Part shown: positions 36,401-53,640 of the stretch, in pieces
Layout of the letters: each line of letters starts with the position of its first letter
Numbering within the stretch: position 1 is the stretch's first letter
Assembly: GCA_965603825.1 (NCBI GenBank)
Contig: CBFDEM010000032.1
Coordinates: 248,001 to 312,000 of the forward strand
Origin: Blepharisma stoltei ATCC 30299
Taxonomy: Eukaryota; Protista; Ciliophora
Direction: 5' to 3'
DNA: 64,000 bases
Translations under genes and position numbers: made by a program
Notes under the pieces: model-generated
What the model saw: only the letters and a program-made list of their open reading frames with translations
What the model was told of the DNA's origin: nothing
The model's database searches: none

Positions 36401-37510
36401 ATGCCAAAATTAGTGTTGTTGAGCTTAATTATGCTATGCTTCAGTTGAATTATTTATGTGATTTGCAACATGATGGACTTATTCATCCTTCCTTCATACC
36501 AGAACTATGAAGAATGTGAAGTAATTCAAACGAACGGTTCATTAGAAGATATCACATTTTATGGAAATATTGCTATTGGAGGAGAAGACGATAGAGTCCC
36601 TTTATTTACAGAGTCTTTTGCTGCAAGTAAAAGAAAAGAAGGCAGACTACTCGCAATTGACATAGGGAGTAAAAGCACATACGAAATTCCAATCCATAAT
36701 TTCCCCAAAGAAATAGGATTTCATCCTCATGGACTATTTTTATTCAAGAATGAAACTTTATATATTTTAAATCATGCGTTTAATAGAGGTGGAGAAAGAG
36801 TAGAAGTTATCAAGCTACAAGAAAACGAAGGAAAGATAGAAGCTACCTATTTAAGATCTATAGTCTTCGATGATGAATTCATAGCTCAATTTAATGATTT
36901 AGCTGTGATAGATGAAGACGAATTTTACATAACTCAGTCAATTCCTTATAATGAATCTCCTGAAGGCTTAGATCTTTCAGGCTGGCATCAAGCCAAGATG
37001 TTTTTGACAATGCAATTTACTAAAAGTTGCAATTTGTATTACTGCAAAAATGTGAACGGCAAAGCCGACTGCAAATCGCAAGATAAGAGTAACCTCTACA
37101 ATGGTATCAACATTTTAGGAAGCACACTTTATGTTACAGAATCTGTTTTAAAGCAAATCATTACATACAATATAACAGAAGATAGATCGCTTAAATTTAT
37201 TGAGTCTTTTAATGTATTATTCCATCCTGATAACATTGAAGTTTCGGATGAGCCAAACATTTTGTACGTTGCAGGATTTTCGAAGATCTCTGAATTGGCT
37301 GATTTCATGGAAAAGCTTAAAACCGTGAAGTATCCTGAACTCTCAAGTGGAGTATATAAACTGAATCACACGATTGGCGATGTGAGCAAAAAGAATATGA
37401 TAATGCAAAAAAAAATGCCGATAAGTGTTGCTGCAGCTAAAAACAATACCTTCATAATTGGTTCTTTTACACATGATATGGTTATGATTTGCCCCATAAA
37501 ACAATCCTAA
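36401..37510 (+). CDS. paraoxonase/arylesterase-like beta-propeller (369 aa)
   Basis: N-terminal signal/anchor through TGA; EDI, FHPHGL, NH, FNDL, NGI, DNIEV motifs. Confidence 0.87.
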
Positions 37511-37976
37511 ATAACGAAGTTATTTCTCTTTATTTCTAAAATTTTAAGCTAATCTCTTATATTTTCAAGTAATTAGTCTGACCAGAATTATAGTGTACAT
37601 TTTTAAATTATTATAAAATATTAATTTAAAGTCTTTATAAAATTAAAGAATGAGAACTTAAAAGTAAGAATAACTCTTCTCATATAGCATAGTTAAACTT
37701 TTCTAATATTCTCTGATGTAATTCGAGAGCTATCAAAATTTTTCATTATTTACTCCAGTTTTGATTGGTGGATTAATAATATATCCAACAAAATCGGCAC
37801 CAACTATATTATCTTTTAACTCTTCACTATCTTTATGATTGCTAAAACCGATACTGATTCTTTATTTTATTAATGATTTGCCATTAGCATTATTAATAAA
37901 TGTGTTCTGACATTTTTATTAAATTTACCGACTGATGTTGATTTATTAATGGTAAGTTTTAATTGTTAATAATAAT

Positions 37977-40880
37977 ATGTATACCATGCAGCCTATAATC
38001 CTTTGTATTCTATTCGCATCTGCTTATTGCATTGCAACCCAAGCAGAGCAAAACACAATGACTCCCTTATCAGATGATGAAGGAATTAATTTCCTAGAAA
38101 AAGGAAGTGGGGGCGGCAAAAAATGGTCATTCTTACAAATAGAAGACGCCGATGGGAAATCTGGAACATGGAGTTCAGGAGGATCACAATCTACAAGCAC
38201 AGGCTCAACAGTTCCAGCGAGTTCTGGTTCAGGATCTGGAAACGCTTCAGGCCAGCAAGGGAAAACTGACTCGCAATCTTCTGGTCAAAACAATCAAAAA
38301 CAGTCAACGGCTACTGGGCAGCAAAGTGGAGGGCAAAGCTATGGAGGAAGCCAACAAACCGGACAACAGGAGGGAAACGATTATCAATACTCTTATGGAG
38401 GAAGTCAACAAACTGGGTCAAGTGGAGCATCTGGCCAGCAAAATTATGGAAATCAGCAATCAACTCAAGGCGGATCATCTGGCCAGCAAAATTATGGAAA
38501 TCAGCAACCGACTCAAGGCGGATCATCTGGCCAGCAAAATTATGGAAATCAGCAACCAACTCAAGGAGGATCATCAGGACAAAGTAACACTGGCAATCAA
38601 CAACCAACTCAAGGCTACTCTTCAGGCCAAACCAATACTGGAAATCAACAGCCAAGTCAAGGCCAAAATAATAATGGCAGCCAACAACCAACTCAAAATG
38701 GATCATCAGGACAAAGTAATACTGGCAGTCAGCAGCCAACTCAAGGTGGATCATCAGGCCAAAGTACCGGCAATCAGCAATGAACTCAAGGCGGATCATC
38801 AGGACAAAGTAATACTGGCAATCAACAGCCAACTCAAGGCGGATCATCAGGACAAAATTCCAGCGGGAACAGTCAGTCAACTCAAGGGGGGTCATCAGGA
38901 AATCAGCAACCATCTCAAGGAGAATCATCCGGGCAATATAACTCTCAATCCACATCAACTCAAGGCCAGCCATCTTCTGGTGAAAGCTCTTCTCAAGGAT
39001 CAACATCTGGACAAACTTCATCCACTTCTAGCACTTCCTTCTTAGAAACAGAGCACAATCAATCAGGATATATAACATCTGGAGAACAGGGATACTCTAC
39101 AACAAATGGGAATAATGCCAATTATGGAGCCACTAATGGTGGAGAAAATTCTAATTATAGCGGCTCAGGATCTGGGAACACTGGAGGAGGAAATAGCCAG
39201 CAAGCAGGAAGTTCTTGTGCTGGAGGATGCTGTCAAGGAGGAAACTGCGGTTCAGCTGGGAGCGGTGGAGGAAGTCAGCAGGGATCTAATGGTAACTCTC
39301 AGCAAGGTGGAAACTACGGTTCAACTGGAAATACCGTAGGGGGTCAGTCTGGAAATGATAAATCTCAAGGGGAAAGCTGTGACTCTAAGCAATGTAGTAG
39401 TAGTTCAACTGGAGGAAATCAATCAGGGTGTGAAGGTAAAAATTGCCAAGGAGGAAAGGGAGTTTGGTTTTTGCAAAATCTCAGAGGCTCAGGAAGCTCA
39501 GATCAAGGAATAAATGGGTCAAATAATGGAAGTGGGCAACAAGGAAGTTCCGGATCTATAGGTGGACAGCAGGGTTCAAGTAGTCAAAACAGCGGAAATT
39601 ATGGAACGGAAACGAATACAATGGGCGGTCAACAAGGGAATTACGGATCTGGCACAATGAGTGGACAACAGGGAAATTATGGAACGAGCAGTCAGGGCCA
39701 AGAAAATTATGGAACAGGAATGGATACTAATAGCGGTCAAATGAATGGTCAGCAAGGCAGTTCTGGATCAAGTGGCCAAAATTATGGATCAGGAATGAAT
39801 TCCATGGGTGGTAGTCAAGGGCAGATGGGAAGCTCCGGATCAAGTGGCCAAAATTATGGATCAGGAATGAATTCTATGGGTGGCAGTCAAGGACAGATGG
39901 GAAGCTCCGGATCAAGTGGCCAAGGAACTTATGGAACAGGAATGAATACTATGGGTGGTAGTCAAGGACAGATGGGAAGCTCCGGATCAAGTAACCAAGG
40001 AACAGGAATGAGTAATATGGGCAATAGCCAAGGACAGCAAAGTGGAACCATTTTTATTGAAGATTATCAAGGCTCCTCAGGAAATGTAGGCCTTAGTTCA
40101 AATACTGGAACAACGGGCAACACTAGTGGCAACGGAAGCCAATCATGTACTGGCTGCAATAATGGTAGCTCTTGTGGCAATTCAAATTGTCCTAGCGGAA
40201 ACAGTGGCTCAACGAATAACTCTGGAGTCAACAATTCAGGAGCACAAGGATGTGGCTGTTCAAATGTTGGATGCGATGGGAAATGCAACAATTCAGAAGT
40301 GCAAGGATGCGATGGCTCAAATTGTGGAAGCAGTGGATCTACAAATGCAGGAGGATCAAATACTGGGACTCAAGGAGGTTGCTCAAATCCTGGATGCGGA
40401 AGTGGGTCAAGCACTCAAGGATGCTGCACAAACCAAGGACAAGGTACATCTTCAACTGGCAGCTCTCAAGGGGGGATGGGCAATAATCAAGGATATTCTC
40501 AAGGCTCCGGCTCAGATACAACCTCTTCAGGAATGTATGGTAATCAAGGTTCGACTTCAGGAGGAATGTGGAGTAATAACGACCCCACCATGGATTGGCC
40601 TGGCTCAGGCATTTCATTCTTAGAAAGCGATAATGACTTATCTGCTGAATTTAATGAACTTGATTTCATGGAAGTGGATAACGATGTCTTTGTTGAAATT
40701 TCTTCCGAACTGGATTGGGATGATTATGACATGGATGACTTTGACGAATGGAGGGCAAACAGAACTTCGCGTCGAAATGAAACTTCATCATCATCTGATT
40801 CATCAGAGCCAACTAATACAACAGATACAATTGGTGCAACTGGTACAACTAGCACGACTAGTGGTTTCTTCTTCTTTTAA
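37977..40880 (+). CDS. secreted Gly/Ser/Gln/Asn-rich repetitive protein with Cys-rich blocks (967 aa)
   Basis: Signal peptide; frame checked open from 37977 to TAA 40878 with a single TGA at 38781. Confidence 0.88.
38428..38900 (+). repeat. coding tandem repeat, 48-bp unit (SSGQQNYGNQQPTQGG), roughly 9-10 diverging copies
   Basis: catctggccagcaaaattatggaaatcagcaa recurs at 38428, 38476, 38524, then degenerates. Confidence 0.9.
39756..39995 (+). repeat. coding tandem repeat, 72-bp unit (GSSGSSGQNYGSGMNSMGGSQGQM), about 3 copies
   Basis: ggatcaagtggcca recurs at 39765, 39837, 39909. Confidence 0.9.
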
Positions 40881-40966
40881 CTGAAGAAGATTAATTAACA
40901 CTTTTATTAAAACCTCTCTCAATTAAAAAGAAACTTTTTTTTCATTCACTAAAATTGATACATTAA

Positions 40967-46435: not shown

Positions 46436-48585
46436 ATGAATTATAAAGTAAGCCATGGAGCACATATAGCTAATATCAAGAAAAATCAATGTTTTCTAAC
46501 CTCAAAATCAAAATATCATTTTTTATGTGCTTCTAAATCGCCAAATGAAGCAAAATTATTTATCGCTAAAGTTATCGCTAAAGTTATCGCCAGGGATATT
46601 CCAAAACTAAAAGGAATTGACTCTATAGTGCACAGTTATTTCAATAGAATCAACATCGAGAATTATTTAGATATCATTATTCTTTTAGTTCCATTAATAA
46701 CTCAAAATTTGCAAGAAGATTTATGCAATGTCATCAAACTAACTAGATCTTCAGATTCCATAAATTTAGCAGCAATAAATGCAATTTTTATATTAAACAG
46801 GGCTGATTTTGAATTTAGGAATATAGATTTCAGTAGAATAAATATTTCAGGAGCTAATCTATCAGAAAGTTTCTTTTTCAATGTAAATTTTGAAGGCAGC
46901 AACCTCAAAGCAGTAAACTTCACTCAATCGAAATTATCCAACTGCAATTTTCGGAATTGTGACTTCAGAGATGCCGTTTTTAGTAACTTTATATTTTTTG
47001 GGAAGCATAAGAAGTTTATTAAAATCGTAAAAATTTCAAAAAATGACGAACTTCTCCTTGCATATAGCGAAAAATGCGCGAATTTGTGGAACTTAAAGAA
47101 AAAAACGTTTCTTAAGACATTATACATTGATATTCGTGATGCTGAATTTTCTCCATGTGGAAATTTTATTGCTTTTATATGTGATAACTTTTCACTCTGG
47201 ATATGAGATATAAAAAATAAAGTAAAACCCCAAAAAGTGCATGAAAAGATAAGCAATATCGCATTTTCTCCATACGAAAATATATAGTATTTAGCTGCAA
47301 TGATTTTGTCCAACTGAATTGTTTAAAGCATTTCAAAATGCGCAATAAATGAAGAATCAAAAATTTTCGCAACCTTACTTTTACTAAATGCGGAAAGTTC
47401 ATTCTAGGTGTCTCTGACAGCATATGGATAAAGCAGGTGTCTATTATAAGCGAAACTGTGGAATTGTTTTGTGACCCTAAATGGCATGAAATATGAGTAT
47501 ACTTCTTTTTGTCACCAAGTCATAAATATTTCTGCCTTATTGGTAAAAACTTTTCTATTCTGAATTCAGACACAAAAGAGCTGAAATTTGTATCAAAATG
47601 AAATCCATTCAAAAATCTGCAAGCAATTTCATGATCCCCTTATGAAGATAAAGTCGCTTTTGCAAATTGAGATGGAATATGACTGCTTGATGTTGAAAAG
47701 CAAATGATATCTGCTCAAATTAGAGCTTCATTTTGAAAAACGTGGGCACCGTGCTGACCAATTTGCTTTACAAAATGCGGCAGATATATAATTGTTGGAT
47801 GAAATGATGGGTGAATTAGGCTATGAGTATTAGAAAGCCAAAAAAATCAAAGAAAAATCGAGTTGACGGAAAATTATACAACTTCTGCAGCATTTTCTTC
47901 ATGTGAGAGTTATTTATATAGAGTTAACAATTGTGGCAGTGTTGATAGGTACGATATAATCAAAAAGCACTCAGAAAATTGAATTAAAGGTTCGGGAAAT
48001 TATTATGATAGTGTTGCAACGTTTTCAAGATGTCGAAAATATGTTGCTGTACAACAAAATTCTTGATCACTTGCTGTTTGAAATCTTGACACAAAAGAAA
48101 TATTTTGTGACTTTGAAACAAACCTTATTTCTAGATACGACTTATTAAGTTTTTCGGGTTCTGGAAAGTTGCTTTTTTCTAATAATTGAAAGTCAATGGC
48201 TATTTGAAACCTTGAGCAAAACAGTCTTGTATCAATATTAGAGTGTAATACAAATATGTTAGCCATTTCACTAAATGATAAATATTTCGCATTATCACAA
48301 ACATATAATAGAAGTATTGAAATATGAGAGTTTGAGCAAGATTATAAGAAAATTCAAAACTGAAATTCTGATAGGCCAATTAAGTCACTGCTATTTTCTG
48401 CTTGCTGTGAATTTTTATATTCTGGAGATTATGTAGGGAATGTTGAGATATGGGATTTTAGAAAGGCTGAAAAAATAAGAGCATTCGGAAGATGTAACCA
48501 ATCTGTCATATTCATGGCTATTTGTCCAAGAGGTTTGATCTCTAGGACATCAAGAAAAGTATTTTTATGGAACCCTCCCTGATAA
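46436..48585 (+). pseudogene. pentapeptide-repeat + WD40 gene with one frameshift near 47276-47281 (pseudogene or assembly indel)
   Basis: ANLS/VNFE/SNLK pentapeptides, then WD40 repeats; first frame hits TAG 47285, but a shifted frame stays open 47281-48585 with about 19 TGA, many at WD Trp positions. Confidence 0.7.
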
Positions 48586-48843: not shown

Positions 48844-51800
48844 TTATGAGTTTAATGATGCGCTTTCAATCATATTCTCATACCTGTGCTTTGTTTTTCT
48901 CTTGTTGATGAAAATATAAGTGAAAACTCCTGCCGATATGAAAAGAAGAATGCCCAGACCAACAGCCAGCCACACCCACCATTTTTTATATCATTCTGAG
49001 CTCTTGCTGCTCCCATCTTTGCTAGGAGTTGAACCTTTAGGAGAAAACTCAACTTTAGCTGTTCCTAAAGATTCTTTTGAACCTGAGTCCTCGATGCTTG
49101 CTTCTAGCTCTAAAGTTTCAGAGTCCTCACGTCCGATTGGATTATAAATGACAAGTGGAAACGTTCGCAAAGTGGCACTCACAATTTCAGTAGTGCTGTC
49201 AAGGGAGGTCTGCACCATCAAAATCATTTCCACAATCCCCAATTTTTCAGAGTTTCCCAGTATAATTTTTGTATTGAGAAAGTTAGCGATATTAGTTTCA
49301 GGACTCTCAGAGCCAAGTGGGATTTCAGTGTAAATTGCATTGTCATTTGGCTGAGAATAATTGACAACTCTTAGGAAAGTCTGGTCAGTTTTATAATTAA
49401 AATAGGGATAAGCAAAAAGCTGTAAGCTCTCAATTGCTACCAAAGAATTCATCCAGAAGGCGTTTTCTTCGTTTATAGATGGAACTTGTCTAACGAAATT
49501 GATGTCTGTGTCTCCCAAGCGGAAAATATAGGCGTCCCCTTGATACTCTGTAGCAATGATAGTCATATTATCGCTCAGTAGAACAGCTGACATTAAATGA
49601 AGGCCTCCATAATCTGCAATCAGTGACTCAAATGAAATAACGCTAACCAAATCGTAGAAGACTGGATTTGGAGGCAGATTGTTGGTTTTTAGCCAAAGAA
49701 ATCCTGCACTTTCTTCAATCAAAATTAACTCAGTAGGACTTGTGTATAAAATTGAAGTCAAATAAAACTGGTTTAAGTCCAAAGACTCTGCATCCAGAGT
49801 GAAGTAAGGGTTTAATTCATACTGAGAGTCTTGCTTAACGAGTTGGTAGATCTTTAAGTCTTCTCCGTTATACACAAAAACTAGTGGGTAAAGTTGAGAG
49901 CTATCAACAACAGTCTCAATGATATATGCAGGATATGCAGATGGTATTGGAAATCCTGAAGAAAAGTCTGTAAGATTCAGTGTCATCAAGTAAGTGTTCC
50001 CATAAGTTGATGAGGATTTTGCAAAAACCTCACATGACATAATTAAAAGCTGAGGGAACCCTCCTACTGTATGAATTTTATAGCAAGAAGTGAAGTATGC
50101 TTGGTTGATATTTGCAAGATTGTAGATCTGTAATAGTTTGCTAGGCGACTCACTGGTGTTATATGCAAGAATTTGATTCGGCGCTGAAATATAAAGAATT
50201 TCTCCATAGCTGGCCATATCGTACGCAAAAGTAGTCAAGTTATTGAATGTTAAGGTTTCGCCCATGGAATACTTTCCCAGAATACATATAGGCTGGGCTG
50301 CATTGCAATAATCCGTTGGGTCGATTCTAGTTCCATTTGAATAAACAAGGCCAAATTCTATATTATTACCTATGAATGCTGACAATGGGATCGGAGTTGA
50401 GAATTGAGCATCAATAACTTTCACTTTGCTCCCAGAAGTCAAAACTGAGTTTTCAACGTCGAATCTATCATTGAGCTCAATGACTGTCCCTCTTGACAAG
50501 AAAGCAAAAGTGATGATTACTGAATCAGAATAAAGTTCGTTTTTTGCTATCAACTTGAGGTCTCCTGATACATTTTCATCGGGGACTTGAGTGAAGTTGA
50601 ATTCCAAAAGAGCCCAAGTCGAAATTCCAGTAAAGTAAGGCAGCATATAGGAATGCTGATAAAGAGAAATGTAATCCGAAACTTGGCCCACAGTATAAGT
50701 GCTCAGGTACTGTCCAGAATAGACAAAGAGAAGATTATTTTCTGCCTTGACTGCTGATATACTTCCGACCTGAGACAAGTTGATAGTTGTATAAAGGCTC
50801 TCGAATGTGTACAGATTGTGATAGTCGAACACGAGCACTTTATTTTGTTGAATGTTCTGGCAGAAGACTAGCAAGAAGTCCTCAGTAACTGAAAGTCCAG
50901 TGTAGCTACAGCCTGGCATCACTGGCAAAGTCTTTTCGTACACGAGCTCATTTTCATCTATATTGCAAACAATTATACTGAATGGGTCTGCTTCTTCAGA
51001 AGAAATAATAAACAAGTTTCCATTGGTATATGATATAAAAACACTACTTTCTCTATCTCCGAAGGTAGAGAAGAGCTGATAATCATATAGAGTTTGCTTT
51101 TCAGTAATATCTTTGAGATAAACCAATATCAGTCCGTTGACCAAATCATAGACATAAAGATTGCAGAAATCATTATCAGGAGAAATATCAGTAGGAGTGA
51201 ATTCTGTAATTCCATTAAGTGAATCGCTGCTAATTATCTGAAGAGGATTCAGAGCGATTGCATTGGACCCTACTGTCATATTGAATAGCTGAATTTGGTT
51301 GCCTTTCTCAGCATAGAATATATCACACACAAAACCAATTTTCTCGGAAAATAGGGTCTGGGTGTATGAAATGGTATTCAAGTAGGAAACTGTATAATCA
51401 GTATAGAGAACATAAATATCCCAGTCAACGCTAAATAGTCCAGTACTTGAACTTTGGGATGAGCATTCAATAAGGATATATTTATCCTCAAAGTTATACG
51501 TAGTAGCAAGAGTGGCAGTCTTAGTGGGATCTGAACACTTTAAAGTAGACTGCAAAAATGTCCCTTCGTTGGTTGATGAATAAAGGAAAGCATAAGATGT
51601 GGAGCTTGGAACGGCAACAATTACTCTCAATTTGTCATCAAAGTCTGATATAACGACTGGCGAGTACCCTGCTGTGGTGACCTGGGTTGATGAAATGATA
51701 TTGCTCTTCGGAGGCATGATGATATTGACTTCACACCCATCAATAGGATTACTCATATACATTTGGTAGCTCAAGTCCTGCCCAGACAAGTAGTTAGTCA

Positions 51801-53352
51801 ATGGGAGATAGAAAACCTGATTTAGCTTGGTTATGTTAATTTCTGTGTAGAGCTCAATAGTGTCTGGATTTAAAAACCCATCTGCTGCTGAGTTTCCTCT
51901 CCATGTGTAGATTGTATAATCCCTTGGATCAACTCCCTGTATACTTACATTTGGAGAAATCTGGCTAAAGGAGTTCCAGACTTCTAGTGTCCCATTAAAT
52001 GTATAGCCTGAGTTGCTTGAAAAAAGTGTGATCATTGGATTAGTGTCGATTTCATATGAAAACACATAATTTGGTGTGCTGAAAATAATGTAATAAAAAT
52101 CAGTATCGACATTGTAAGCAATAATATATGGAGGAGTTGTGTCATTGCTCGAGTCATCGTAAAAGAGTTCGTTGACTGGAATGTCATACAACAGGTTTTC
52201 ATACATTTCTTCATCGAGCATTGAGATTCTAAAAGTCACAGTGTTTGCATCTATTACATAGTAGCCAGTTATCAGCTCAGGAGGATACAGACTGATTCTT
52301 GGAAGATTGCTTAATATATAGGGTTGAGATGGATCTTGATATCTTGCAAGCTTCTTTATATAGTAAAACTCTGGTAATCCGTATAGGACTATTCCAGAAG
52401 CTGTTCCAACGTATAGAACGTCACCTTGAAAATTGCATGAAAAGATCTCTCCAAAATCTGTTGGGTCTGCAAGAAGGGATGTGATCAAAAGGGGCTGGTT
52501 TGGAGCTGAAAAGAAATTCGACGACTGGAATTGATATATCCCATTTGTCTGATCACAGATATAACCTCCAGAATTACTAAAAGCTACACTGATTGGGTTG
52601 AATTGCTTCTCCTCAACTGCACTTCCATTTATCTGGTTGAAAAGCTCAGCAGATCGCGACGTCAAATTGTAATGGAAAATCACAATTTGATAGTCTGAGT
52701 TGGAAAGGACAACAGCATGCCAAATTTCGTTATCCGAACCATAAATGCTTGCACCAATGATGCTTCCCTTAGATGTAATTGTAACACTCATTTCTGATAA
52801 GTAATTTACCTCTTCATAGTTAGTAACATTAATAAGGCCTGCTTTGAAACCTGCTGAAGTAGCTTGCAGTATAGCACAAACACTGCTAAGTCCATTAGAG
52901 TATGGAACTACGCTAATTATACTTGATTGGAAAGGAGGCTGGTATGAAGTAATCATTTGTGGGGCGGAAGCATCAGAAATGTCCCAGAGAGTTAAATTAT
53001 TTTCTTCTATAATGAAAATGGTACCTAGATTCATAGGATCTTGTCCTATTAACTCAAAACCGTTTGCTGATGGGATGCTTTGATTTTTATTAACAGAGCC
53101 AGCCAAGGTTATTCCTTGAGATAAATGAGGGAGTTCAGCTTGAGTATTATTAATGATTTCTCCGCTGAGACTATAAGTGAGATTTTTGCCTTGAATTAAA
53201 TCTTTAAGGTAAAAAATCCCTCCTGTGTTAGCTGCGACTCGAAGATCCTGAAGACCCTCTAGCTCAAAAATATTGTCGCCTGTAACTCCATGAAATGTCA
53301 GAAAGACACTAAGAATGAGTGTGAAACATAAAATTCCAATTTTCTCAACCAT
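48844..53352 (-). CDS. large type I membrane glycoprotein (1502 aa), beta-rich ectodomain
   Basis: Signal peptide; many NxS/T sites; after TGA 48991: WYKKWWVW, TM helix, KRK and a YENM tail. Confidence 0.88.
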
Positions 53353-53640
53353 TTTATAAGCAAGTAAATGCAAGAAAGCTCAGAAAGCAAAAGATGGGAT
53401 TAAATTATTTATGAAGTAAAACTGTAAGGACTTAAGAAGACATCTATTTTGTTTAAGATTAGCAAACCCACGCTCTCAAGGATGATCTAAACATCTCATC
53501 TCTTAAATTTTTTAACGCATACTGAAAAGATTTATTTTGCTAAGAACTTATAATAAACTGCAAACGTTTAATACAAACATTGTTCCAGATTCGCTACGCA
53601 AGGTTTTATTTAGTTTAAAATTAATTTCTAGTTAATACAA

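Follow-up and report, generated by a model that had tools for sequence, protein, structure and literature searches.

The aspartyl proteases plasmepsin IX and plasmepsin X (PMIX and PMX, together PMIX/X) of malaria parasites and ASP3 of Toxoplasma are essential maturases and leading drug targets. Substrates of PMX and PMIX carry the tetrapeptides SFIQ, SLVQ, FFIQ, NFLQ, SMLE, SFLE, SFLD, and SFVQ; PMX cleaves between P1 and P1′, and by alanine replacement all four tetrapeptide positions proved important (PMC7146544). The autocleavage site of PMX itself is NFLD (PMC9352755). In Toxoplasma, rhoptry (ROP) proteins share the consensus S-Φ-X-E (ROP1, SFVE↓A; ROP13, SFTE↓G), and their maturation is ASP3-dependent (PMC5595437). 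In the ciliate Tetrahymena, mucocyst proproteins need the aspartyl cathepsin CTH3 for maturation, and the aspartyl cathepsin family is expanded in alveolates (PMC4142616); the cut-site rules for such ciliate granule cargo are poorly defined. Here, we analyzed a gene at 37977–40880 on the forward strand of a 64,000-nucleotide stretch of Blepharisma stoltei DNA (contig CBFDEM010000032.1, positions 248,001 to 312,000), hereafter the window, whose numbering is used unless another contig is named. The gene is probably transcribed, and its product looks like a genuine secreted protein of low complexity and modular build that, judging from its sequence, is probably chopped into pieces at motifs of the form x-F-[LIMV]-[EQ]. 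An earlier note on this DNA had set these motifs beside S-F-x-E/Q as an apicomplexan maturation motif, which agrees with the published sites (PMC5595437, PMC7146544), and beside the proteolytic maturation of ciliate granule cargo, which the requirement for CTH3 bears out (PMC4142616).

The earlier note had listed eight motifs in the protein, and all eight were located at the positions it gave, on the forward strand. NFLE (38088–38099) and SFLQ (38127–38138) follow soon after the signal-peptide-like N-terminus, 15 and 28 residues past it, and are candidates for the removal of a short propeptide. Four internal motifs stand at the borders between four modules (A to D) and an acidic tail: SFLE (39036–39047) between modules A and B, WFLQ (39465–39476) between modules B and C, IFIE (40050–40061) between modules C and D, five residues past the last 24-residue repeat, and a second SFLE (40614–40625) between module D and the acidic tail, where the strongest composition change-point was found. 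DFME (40662) and VFVE (40686) lie inside the acidic tail. SFLE is the site of RAP1, NFLE resembles the Rh5 site NFLQ, and SFLQ resembles SFIQ and SFVQ; the motifs other than SFLE are one position off Rh5, Rh2, or EBA181 sites.

The number of motifs was far beyond what the composition of the protein would give. In 20,000 shuffles, the F[LIMV][EQ] pattern, present eight times in the mature protein, occurred at most three times when residues were shuffled globally and at most four times when they were shuffled within 20-residue blocks; outside the acidic tail, six motifs were observed against a maximum of three. All 10 Phe residues outside the signal peptide and the C-terminal FFFF are followed by x-[EQ], eight of them by [LIMV]-[EQ]. 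The composition-based expectation was 0.15 motifs (Poisson p = 5e-12), which made this protein the most extreme of 181 open reading frames (ORFs) sampled from the genome (62,000 residues; a small sample, biased towards protease loci), and this value survives any reasonable correction for post hoc motif choice. All other ORFs of the sample, apart from one acidic protein described below, fitted the composition expectation. The six core sites have non-homologous flanks and differing codons (for example, TTC CTA GAA, TTC TTA CAA, TTT TTG CAA, and TTT ATT GAA), indicating that these sites are independent rather than copies of one duplicated linker. The four internal sites coincided with composition change-points more often than randomly placed positions did (permutation p = 0.025, with motif residues masked), which moderately supports the earlier description of the motifs as lying near module borders, although other change-points are motif-free. 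Once the signal peptide is removed, the motif tetrapeptides are the sole hydrophobic islands in a G/S/Q/N/T chain, and acidic residues cluster directly after them.

The same punctuation was found in a second protein of this genome, an acidic polyprotein of 718 residues with a signal-peptide-like start (L041:3183–5336, forward strand; contig 63, approximately 526182–528335), which was located by examining the 3′ neighborhoods of 20 aspartyl-protease genes. It is A/E/D-rich (33% D+E) and devoid of Cys. It carries MFLQ nine residues past the signal peptide, and FFIQ, SFVQ, SFVQ, and LFLQ exactly at the starts of units of about 145 residues; FFIQ is identical to the site of Rh1 and SFVQ to that of EBA181. 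The motif accounts for six of the eight Phe residues of the polyprotein (p = 3e-6), which makes this protein the second most extreme of the 181 ORFs. Its gene is arranged tail-to-tail with an A1 (pepsin-family) protease gene (contig 63, 528659–529597, minus strand). The acidic polyprotein shares no sequence with the main protein and had no match in a word-index protein search. Both proteins have a signal peptide, F-[LIV]-[EQ] sites just after it and at borders, and nearly all of their Phe in the motif, and both are orphans in our searches. They differ in that the acidic polyprotein is A/E/D-rich without Cys or Gly-rich repeats, and in that its units are true repeats whose sites are partly copies of one another, whereas the sites of the main protein are independent. 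The occurrence of the same punctuation in two proteins of opposite composition argues that the motif is functional. On sequence grounds, the acidic polyprotein is the strongest added argument for a function of the motif, and the main protein is an independent second case of apparent motif punctuation in this genome.

Apart from the motifs, the protein is built of low-complexity modules, all of which had been described in the earlier note and all of which are present. The N-terminus (residues 1 to ~23; 37977–38045) is signal-peptide-like, with the hydrophobic core IILCILFASAYCIA, small residues at −3/−1, and a hydropathy score of 2.92, among the highest of the sampled ORFs; these heuristic criteria, applied in place of a dedicated predictor, agree with the signal peptide proposed earlier. 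A short charged stretch follows. Module A (residues 53–355, ~30 kDa) is an S/G/T/Q region of Q/S/G repeats without Cys, at the core of which repeat analysis found about 10 tandem repeats of 48 nucleotides (16 residues) rich in G/S/Q/N/T/P (38424–38900). Module B (residues 356–498, ~14 kDa) consists of an N/G/Y stretch and a first Cys block, with eight Cys and three C-x4-C loops (residues 414–490; 39216–39446). Module C (residues 499–693, ~19 kDa) has 15 Met and includes 72-nucleotide (24-residue), Met-containing G/S/Q/N repeats (39703–40037, from the same repeat analysis), and module D (residues 694–881, ~18 kDa) contains a second Cys block, with 14 Cys and four C-x4-C loops (residues 724–817; 40146–40427). 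The acidic tail (40626–40877) runs through EFNE, DFME, VFVE, and DFDE into a short basic and S/T-rich stretch and ends in GFFFF. Overall, G/S/Q/N/T make up about 75% of residues and Tyr 2.8%, the latter regularly spaced in the repeats.

Cys is even in number in both blocks and forms seven C-x4-C pairs in total (for example, C-x-G-x-N-C). This pattern matched no named Cys-rich domain; the even counts and the spacing suggest small disulfide loops or cross-links. Structure prediction for residues 270–967 gave a chain disordered throughout (mean predicted local distance difference test score, 31.8), with one short, weakly predicted helix at about residues 914–927 in the acidic tail. Since the chain is predicted to be disordered, the motif sites would be accessible to a protease. 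A glycosylphosphatidylinositol-anchored or membrane protein was considered and rejected: only four terminal Phe follow the polar S/T-rich stretch, and there is no other hydrophobic run.

The open frame, its codon usage, and contigs without joints mark 37977–40880 as a complete coding sequence for an orphan, probably secreted low-complexity protein. It is a single open frame of 967 sense codons closed by TAA (40878–40880), in which no intron was seen. The somatic genome of B. stoltei comprises 41 Mbp in 64 telomere-to-telomere sequences, has an AT content of 66%, uses UGA as a Trp codon, and contains introns of 15–16 bp (PMC9942806); our genome-wide scans covered the 41.46-Mb assembly of 64 contigs. 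Over its 967 codons, the coding frame is free of TAA and TAG, whereas each of the five other frames has 7 to 46, and synonymous codon use agrees with that of other long ORFs of the genome. One TGA is in frame (38781–38783), at a position of the 16-residue repeat that is usually Pro, and should be read as Trp in the product: TGA occurs at 5.2 per 1000 codons in other long ORFs and in frame within dozens of otherwise intact aspartyl-protease genes of the same genome. Two strings shaped as 15- and 16-nucleotide introns (GTA...AG) occur inside the Met-repeat region, at 39991–40005 and 40012–40027. They were rejected as introns: one ends in CAG, and removal of the 16-nucleotide string would disrupt a reading frame that is open for roughly another 290 codons.

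Logan contigs from four runs of one 2022 study, whose type we could only guess to be RNA, cover 38384–40891 piecewise at ≥99% identity. Across the gene body, these contigs have no joints and retain the TGA; none from the four runs lies in the 89-nucleotide spacer before the next gene or in the region 37700–38383. This pattern, with the gene body covered and the flanks not, looks like a weakly expressed transcript rather than genomic DNA. In two runs, the contigs are interrupted between about 39990 and 40046, an effect that we attribute to the repeats. One contig (run X1) tracks the gene to 39030, just before the first internal SFLE, and then continues for 58 nucleotides foreign to the reference genome; a loose 30-nucleotide contig end at 39030 had no counterpart there with up to three mismatches allowed. 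In one frame, this extension reads like a variant copy of the 16-residue repeat, and it may come from an allele with another number of repeats, from a different strain, or from a chimeric assembly.

Homology searches were performed with the pieces on either side of the TGA, residues 1–268 and 270–967. Neither piece matched a Pfam family at E ≤ 0.1, and a paralogue search of the genome itself returned only self-matches within the repeats, so the gene is single-copy. Residues 270–967 had no match in the word-index protein search, nor did the acidic tail alone, and an exhaustive phmmer search of 1.84 billion representatives with residues 270–967 gave 0 matches. The protein atlas offered no usable match, and scans of metagenome contigs with N- and C-terminal pieces revealed no relative. 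Low-complexity sequence being hard to match, these failures are weak evidence of absence. For the ciliate granule families, Grl of Tetrahymena and the trichocyst matrix proteins (TMPs) of Paramecium, there was no family match and no similarity in the Pfam, genome, or protein searches, none of which involved direct comparison with Grl/TMP sequences. The label "silk/glue-like" in the earlier note holds for composition and not for homology, as neither piece had a Pfam match to silk, sericin, or glue families at E ≤ 0.1 and the protein atlas again gave no usable match.

Candidate proteases are plentiful. The A1 family (PF00026) is greatly expanded in this genome, with 84 matches at no fewer than 75 loci and several tandem clusters. 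Loci include contig 13 at 547–557 kb and 878–885 kb, contig 26 at 110–126 kb, and contig 20 at 305–311 kb; many of the ORFs, at 430–590 residues, are longer than plain cathepsin D. A few cathepsin propeptides carry K-[FL]-[IL]-Q within a conserved propeptide segment, which we judged uninformative on the junction between pro and mature parts. Our literature search revealed no paper that connects the PMIX/X motif with ciliate cargo, and, within the library searched, CTH3 and ASP3 were named together only in one 2014 paper (PMC4142616). The search likewise turned up no proteomics of secretions, extrusomes, or cysts from Blepharisma.

The reading we favor, with a rough probability of 45%, is that the protein is a disordered matrix or mucus precursor cut at its motifs by a secretory aspartyl protease; its secretion, cleavage, protease class, destination, and material role are what we infer. 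The chain would be targeted to the secretory pathway and enter the endoplasmic reticulum, where the signal peptide would be removed, and, being intrinsically disordered, would expose its sole Phe-aliphatic dipeptides. An A1 protease of the secretory or endolysosomal pathway would then cut F↓[LIV], with Phe as P1 and the aliphatic residue as P1′. This cut is proposed by analogy, because PMIX/X cuts identical tetrapeptides and mucocyst proproteins comparably depend on CTH3. Cutting would remove an N-terminal propeptide of 16–29 residues and the acidic C-terminal tail, whose role may be to maintain the solubility of the precursor or to direct it during sorting, and would free modules A, B, C, and D. 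The repeat modules (A and C) could form a hydrated gel or mucus, which the Cys modules (B and D) could cross-link via disulfides. The modules would assemble into extrusome (mucocyst or pigment-granule) content, mucus, or a cyst wall, a destination at which we can only guess.

Several points weigh against this reading. Cleavage is predicted from sequence alone, and no orthologue or paralogue was found in which the sites could be seen to be conserved. The earlier note had proposed looking for motif enrichment among proteins with signal peptides; beyond the two outlier proteins, signal-peptide-like ORFs of the small, biased 181-ORF sample showed none, with about 11 motifs observed against 14 expected. 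Several composition change-points carry no motif, and the border test reached just p = 0.025. The first 400 nucleotides of the gene, including the signal peptide, have no contig cover in the four runs. Both A1 proteases compared (L019 and L021) were closest to cathepsin E/D, at 238–246 bits versus 107–146 bits for PMX, although these are two of at least 75 loci and the divergent, longer members were not among them. In addition, ASP3 terminomics gave no clear consensus (PMC5595437).

These points leave room for a possible alternative, to which we give less credence: that the protein is secreted but left uncut at the motifs, and that the F-[LIV]-[EQ] islands with their following acidic residues are short linear motifs of another kind. 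They could act as stickers for gelation or assembly, as sites for a sortilin/VPS10-type receptor of granule cargo, or as hinges or nucleation points between modules. Such roles would suit islands that stand alone as hydrophobic patches in a chain for which full disorder is predicted and that are closely followed by clustered acidic residues. In Tetrahymena and Toxoplasma, cargo is sorted to granules by way of prodomains and short motifs, which lends a sorting role some precedent. The lack of a general motif excess among other signal-peptide-like ORFs of the sample is also in keeping with this alternative, as is the status of cleavage as a prediction. Against it, the four constrained positions of the motif agree with the specificity of a known protease, down to identical tetrapeptides (PMC7146544). 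In both proteins, the one or two sites directly after the signal peptide fit propeptide removal better than assembly, and a motif at every unit start of the acidic polyprotein is typical of polyprotein linkers.

It is less probable, and on balance improbable, that the protein is cut at or next to the motifs by an enzyme of another class, such as a subtilisin or a cathepsin L-like cysteine protease; the latter prefers a hydrophobic P2 and hence would cut after F-L or L-E. In that case, the motifs would resemble PMIX/X sites through convergence on hydrophobic dipeptides that are accessible. The N-termini of ROP1 and ROP13 map after Glu and were first ascribed to the subtilisin SUB2 (PMC5595437), and CTH3 may act indirectly by activating other proteases, cysteine cathepsins being co-expressed with mucocyst genes (PMC4142616). 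However, PMX directly cuts such tetrapeptides between P1 and P1′ (PMC7146544), and it is the A1 proteases that are greatly expanded in this genome. The data do not separate the protease classes, and it is solely the exactness of the motif match that lowers this explanation relative to cutting by an aspartyl protease.

That there is no meaningful feature here, but a chance frame in low-complexity DNA, a decaying gene in which the TGA is a stop, or a motif picked post hoc, is very improbable: the single in-frame TGA, the definition of the motif after inspection of the sequence, the lack of a homologue in protein searches, and the uncovered first 400 nucleotides are outweighed by 967 codons free of TAA/TAG in a 66% AT genome with typical codon use (against 7 to 46 in other frames), the regular use of TGA as a sense codon (PMC9942806), contigs of four runs that match the gene body and neither flank, and a p value of 5e-12 that outlasts correction for motif choice, and the shuffles, the 181-ORF outlier test, and the frame and codon analysis led us to reject chance or artifact.

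The genes around 37977–40880 are ordinary and unrelated (RabGAP-TBC, YjeF_N, kinase, and ankyrin), and no gene cluster was found among them. The adjoining upstream gene (36401–37507, forward strand) is a 369-codon ORF with one in-frame TGA, a strongly signal-peptide-like N-terminus, and no Pfam family, and its sequence suggests another secreted orphan. Further along the window, the ORF at 46436–47206 (forward strand) encodes pentapeptide repeats (PF00805, E = 1e-11), which are more familiar from bacteria, and the ORF at 48991–53373 (reverse strand) encodes 1460 residues without a Pfam family at E ≤ 0.001.

The finding sits within known secretory proprotein maturation at hydrophobic-acidic tetrapeptides, where the interpretation of aspartyl-protease cutting in B. 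stoltei is plausible and gains strength from the second protein and from tetrapeptides identical to validated sites, and it bears on the origin of the substrate code of PMIX/X and ASP3. With two unrelated secreted polyproteins of one free-living ciliate punctuated by exactly the apicomplexan tetrapeptides, a maturation code shared by alveolates becomes testable; Blepharisma lends itself to bulk culture and to the collection of secretions and cysts, and the predicted neo-N-termini are explicit. We hypothesize, as the earlier note did, that such a processing code is common to alveolates. More specifically, and more doubtfully, the x-F-[LIV]-[E/Q] code and its cutting by A1 proteases may be older than apicomplexan parasitism, with a free-living heterotrich using the code to divide no fewer than two unrelated low-complexity polyproteins into structural modules. 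If so, the PMIX/PMX/ASP3 system would descend from an ancestral alveolate pathway that matured extrusome or matrix cargo. The protein would also be an unusual material, in which gel-like repeat modules alternate with small disulfide-loop (C-x4-C) modules on one chain.

Among known systems, sericin, prion-like G/S/Y/Q domains, and invertebrate adhesives resemble the main protein in being extremely rich in G/S/Q/N/T, in having short tandem repeats with regularly spaced Tyr, and in their predicted disorder. This likeness to silk, glue, and gel proteins is compositional only, and the punctuating motifs and C-x4-C blocks are absent from those families. The coccidian wall precursors offer another comparison. 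Eimeria GAM56 and GAM82 and the Cys-rich oocyst wall proteins are secreted precursors that are cut into peptides and cross-linked into a resistant wall; such precursors contain much Tyr, are linked through dityrosine, and are probably processed by a subtilisin. They resemble the main protein as alveolate secreted precursors with Cys-rich modules and differ from it in that the main protein has just 2.8% Tyr and its role in a cyst wall is a guess.

The Grl proteins of Tetrahymena and the trichocyst matrix proproteins of Paramecium are, like the main protein, secreted precursors of ciliates that are presumed to yield several structural polypeptides on cutting. They are acidic, heptad-repeat, lattice-forming proteins of multigene families, whereas the main protein comes from a single-copy gene and is a G/S/Q/N polymer that includes Cys blocks. 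Maturation of ciliate granule proproteins depends on an A1 protease (PMC4142616), a dependence that the main protein is proposed to share by analogy. Among the substrates of PMIX/X and ASP3 (RAP1, Rh1, Rh2, Rh5, Ripr, EBA175/181, and SUB1; ROP1 and ROP13), there are validated cut sites, whereas those of the main protein are candidates drawn from sequence alone. These substrates are folded adhesins and kinases without sequence homology to the low-complexity repeat polymer of a free-living heterotrich. Nevertheless, both sets are secretory proteins that carry [S/N/x]-[F/L/M]-[L/I/V]-[E/Q/D] tetrapeptides, and in both, one site stands shortly past the signal peptide and others between domains (PMC7146544, PMC5595437, PMC9352755).

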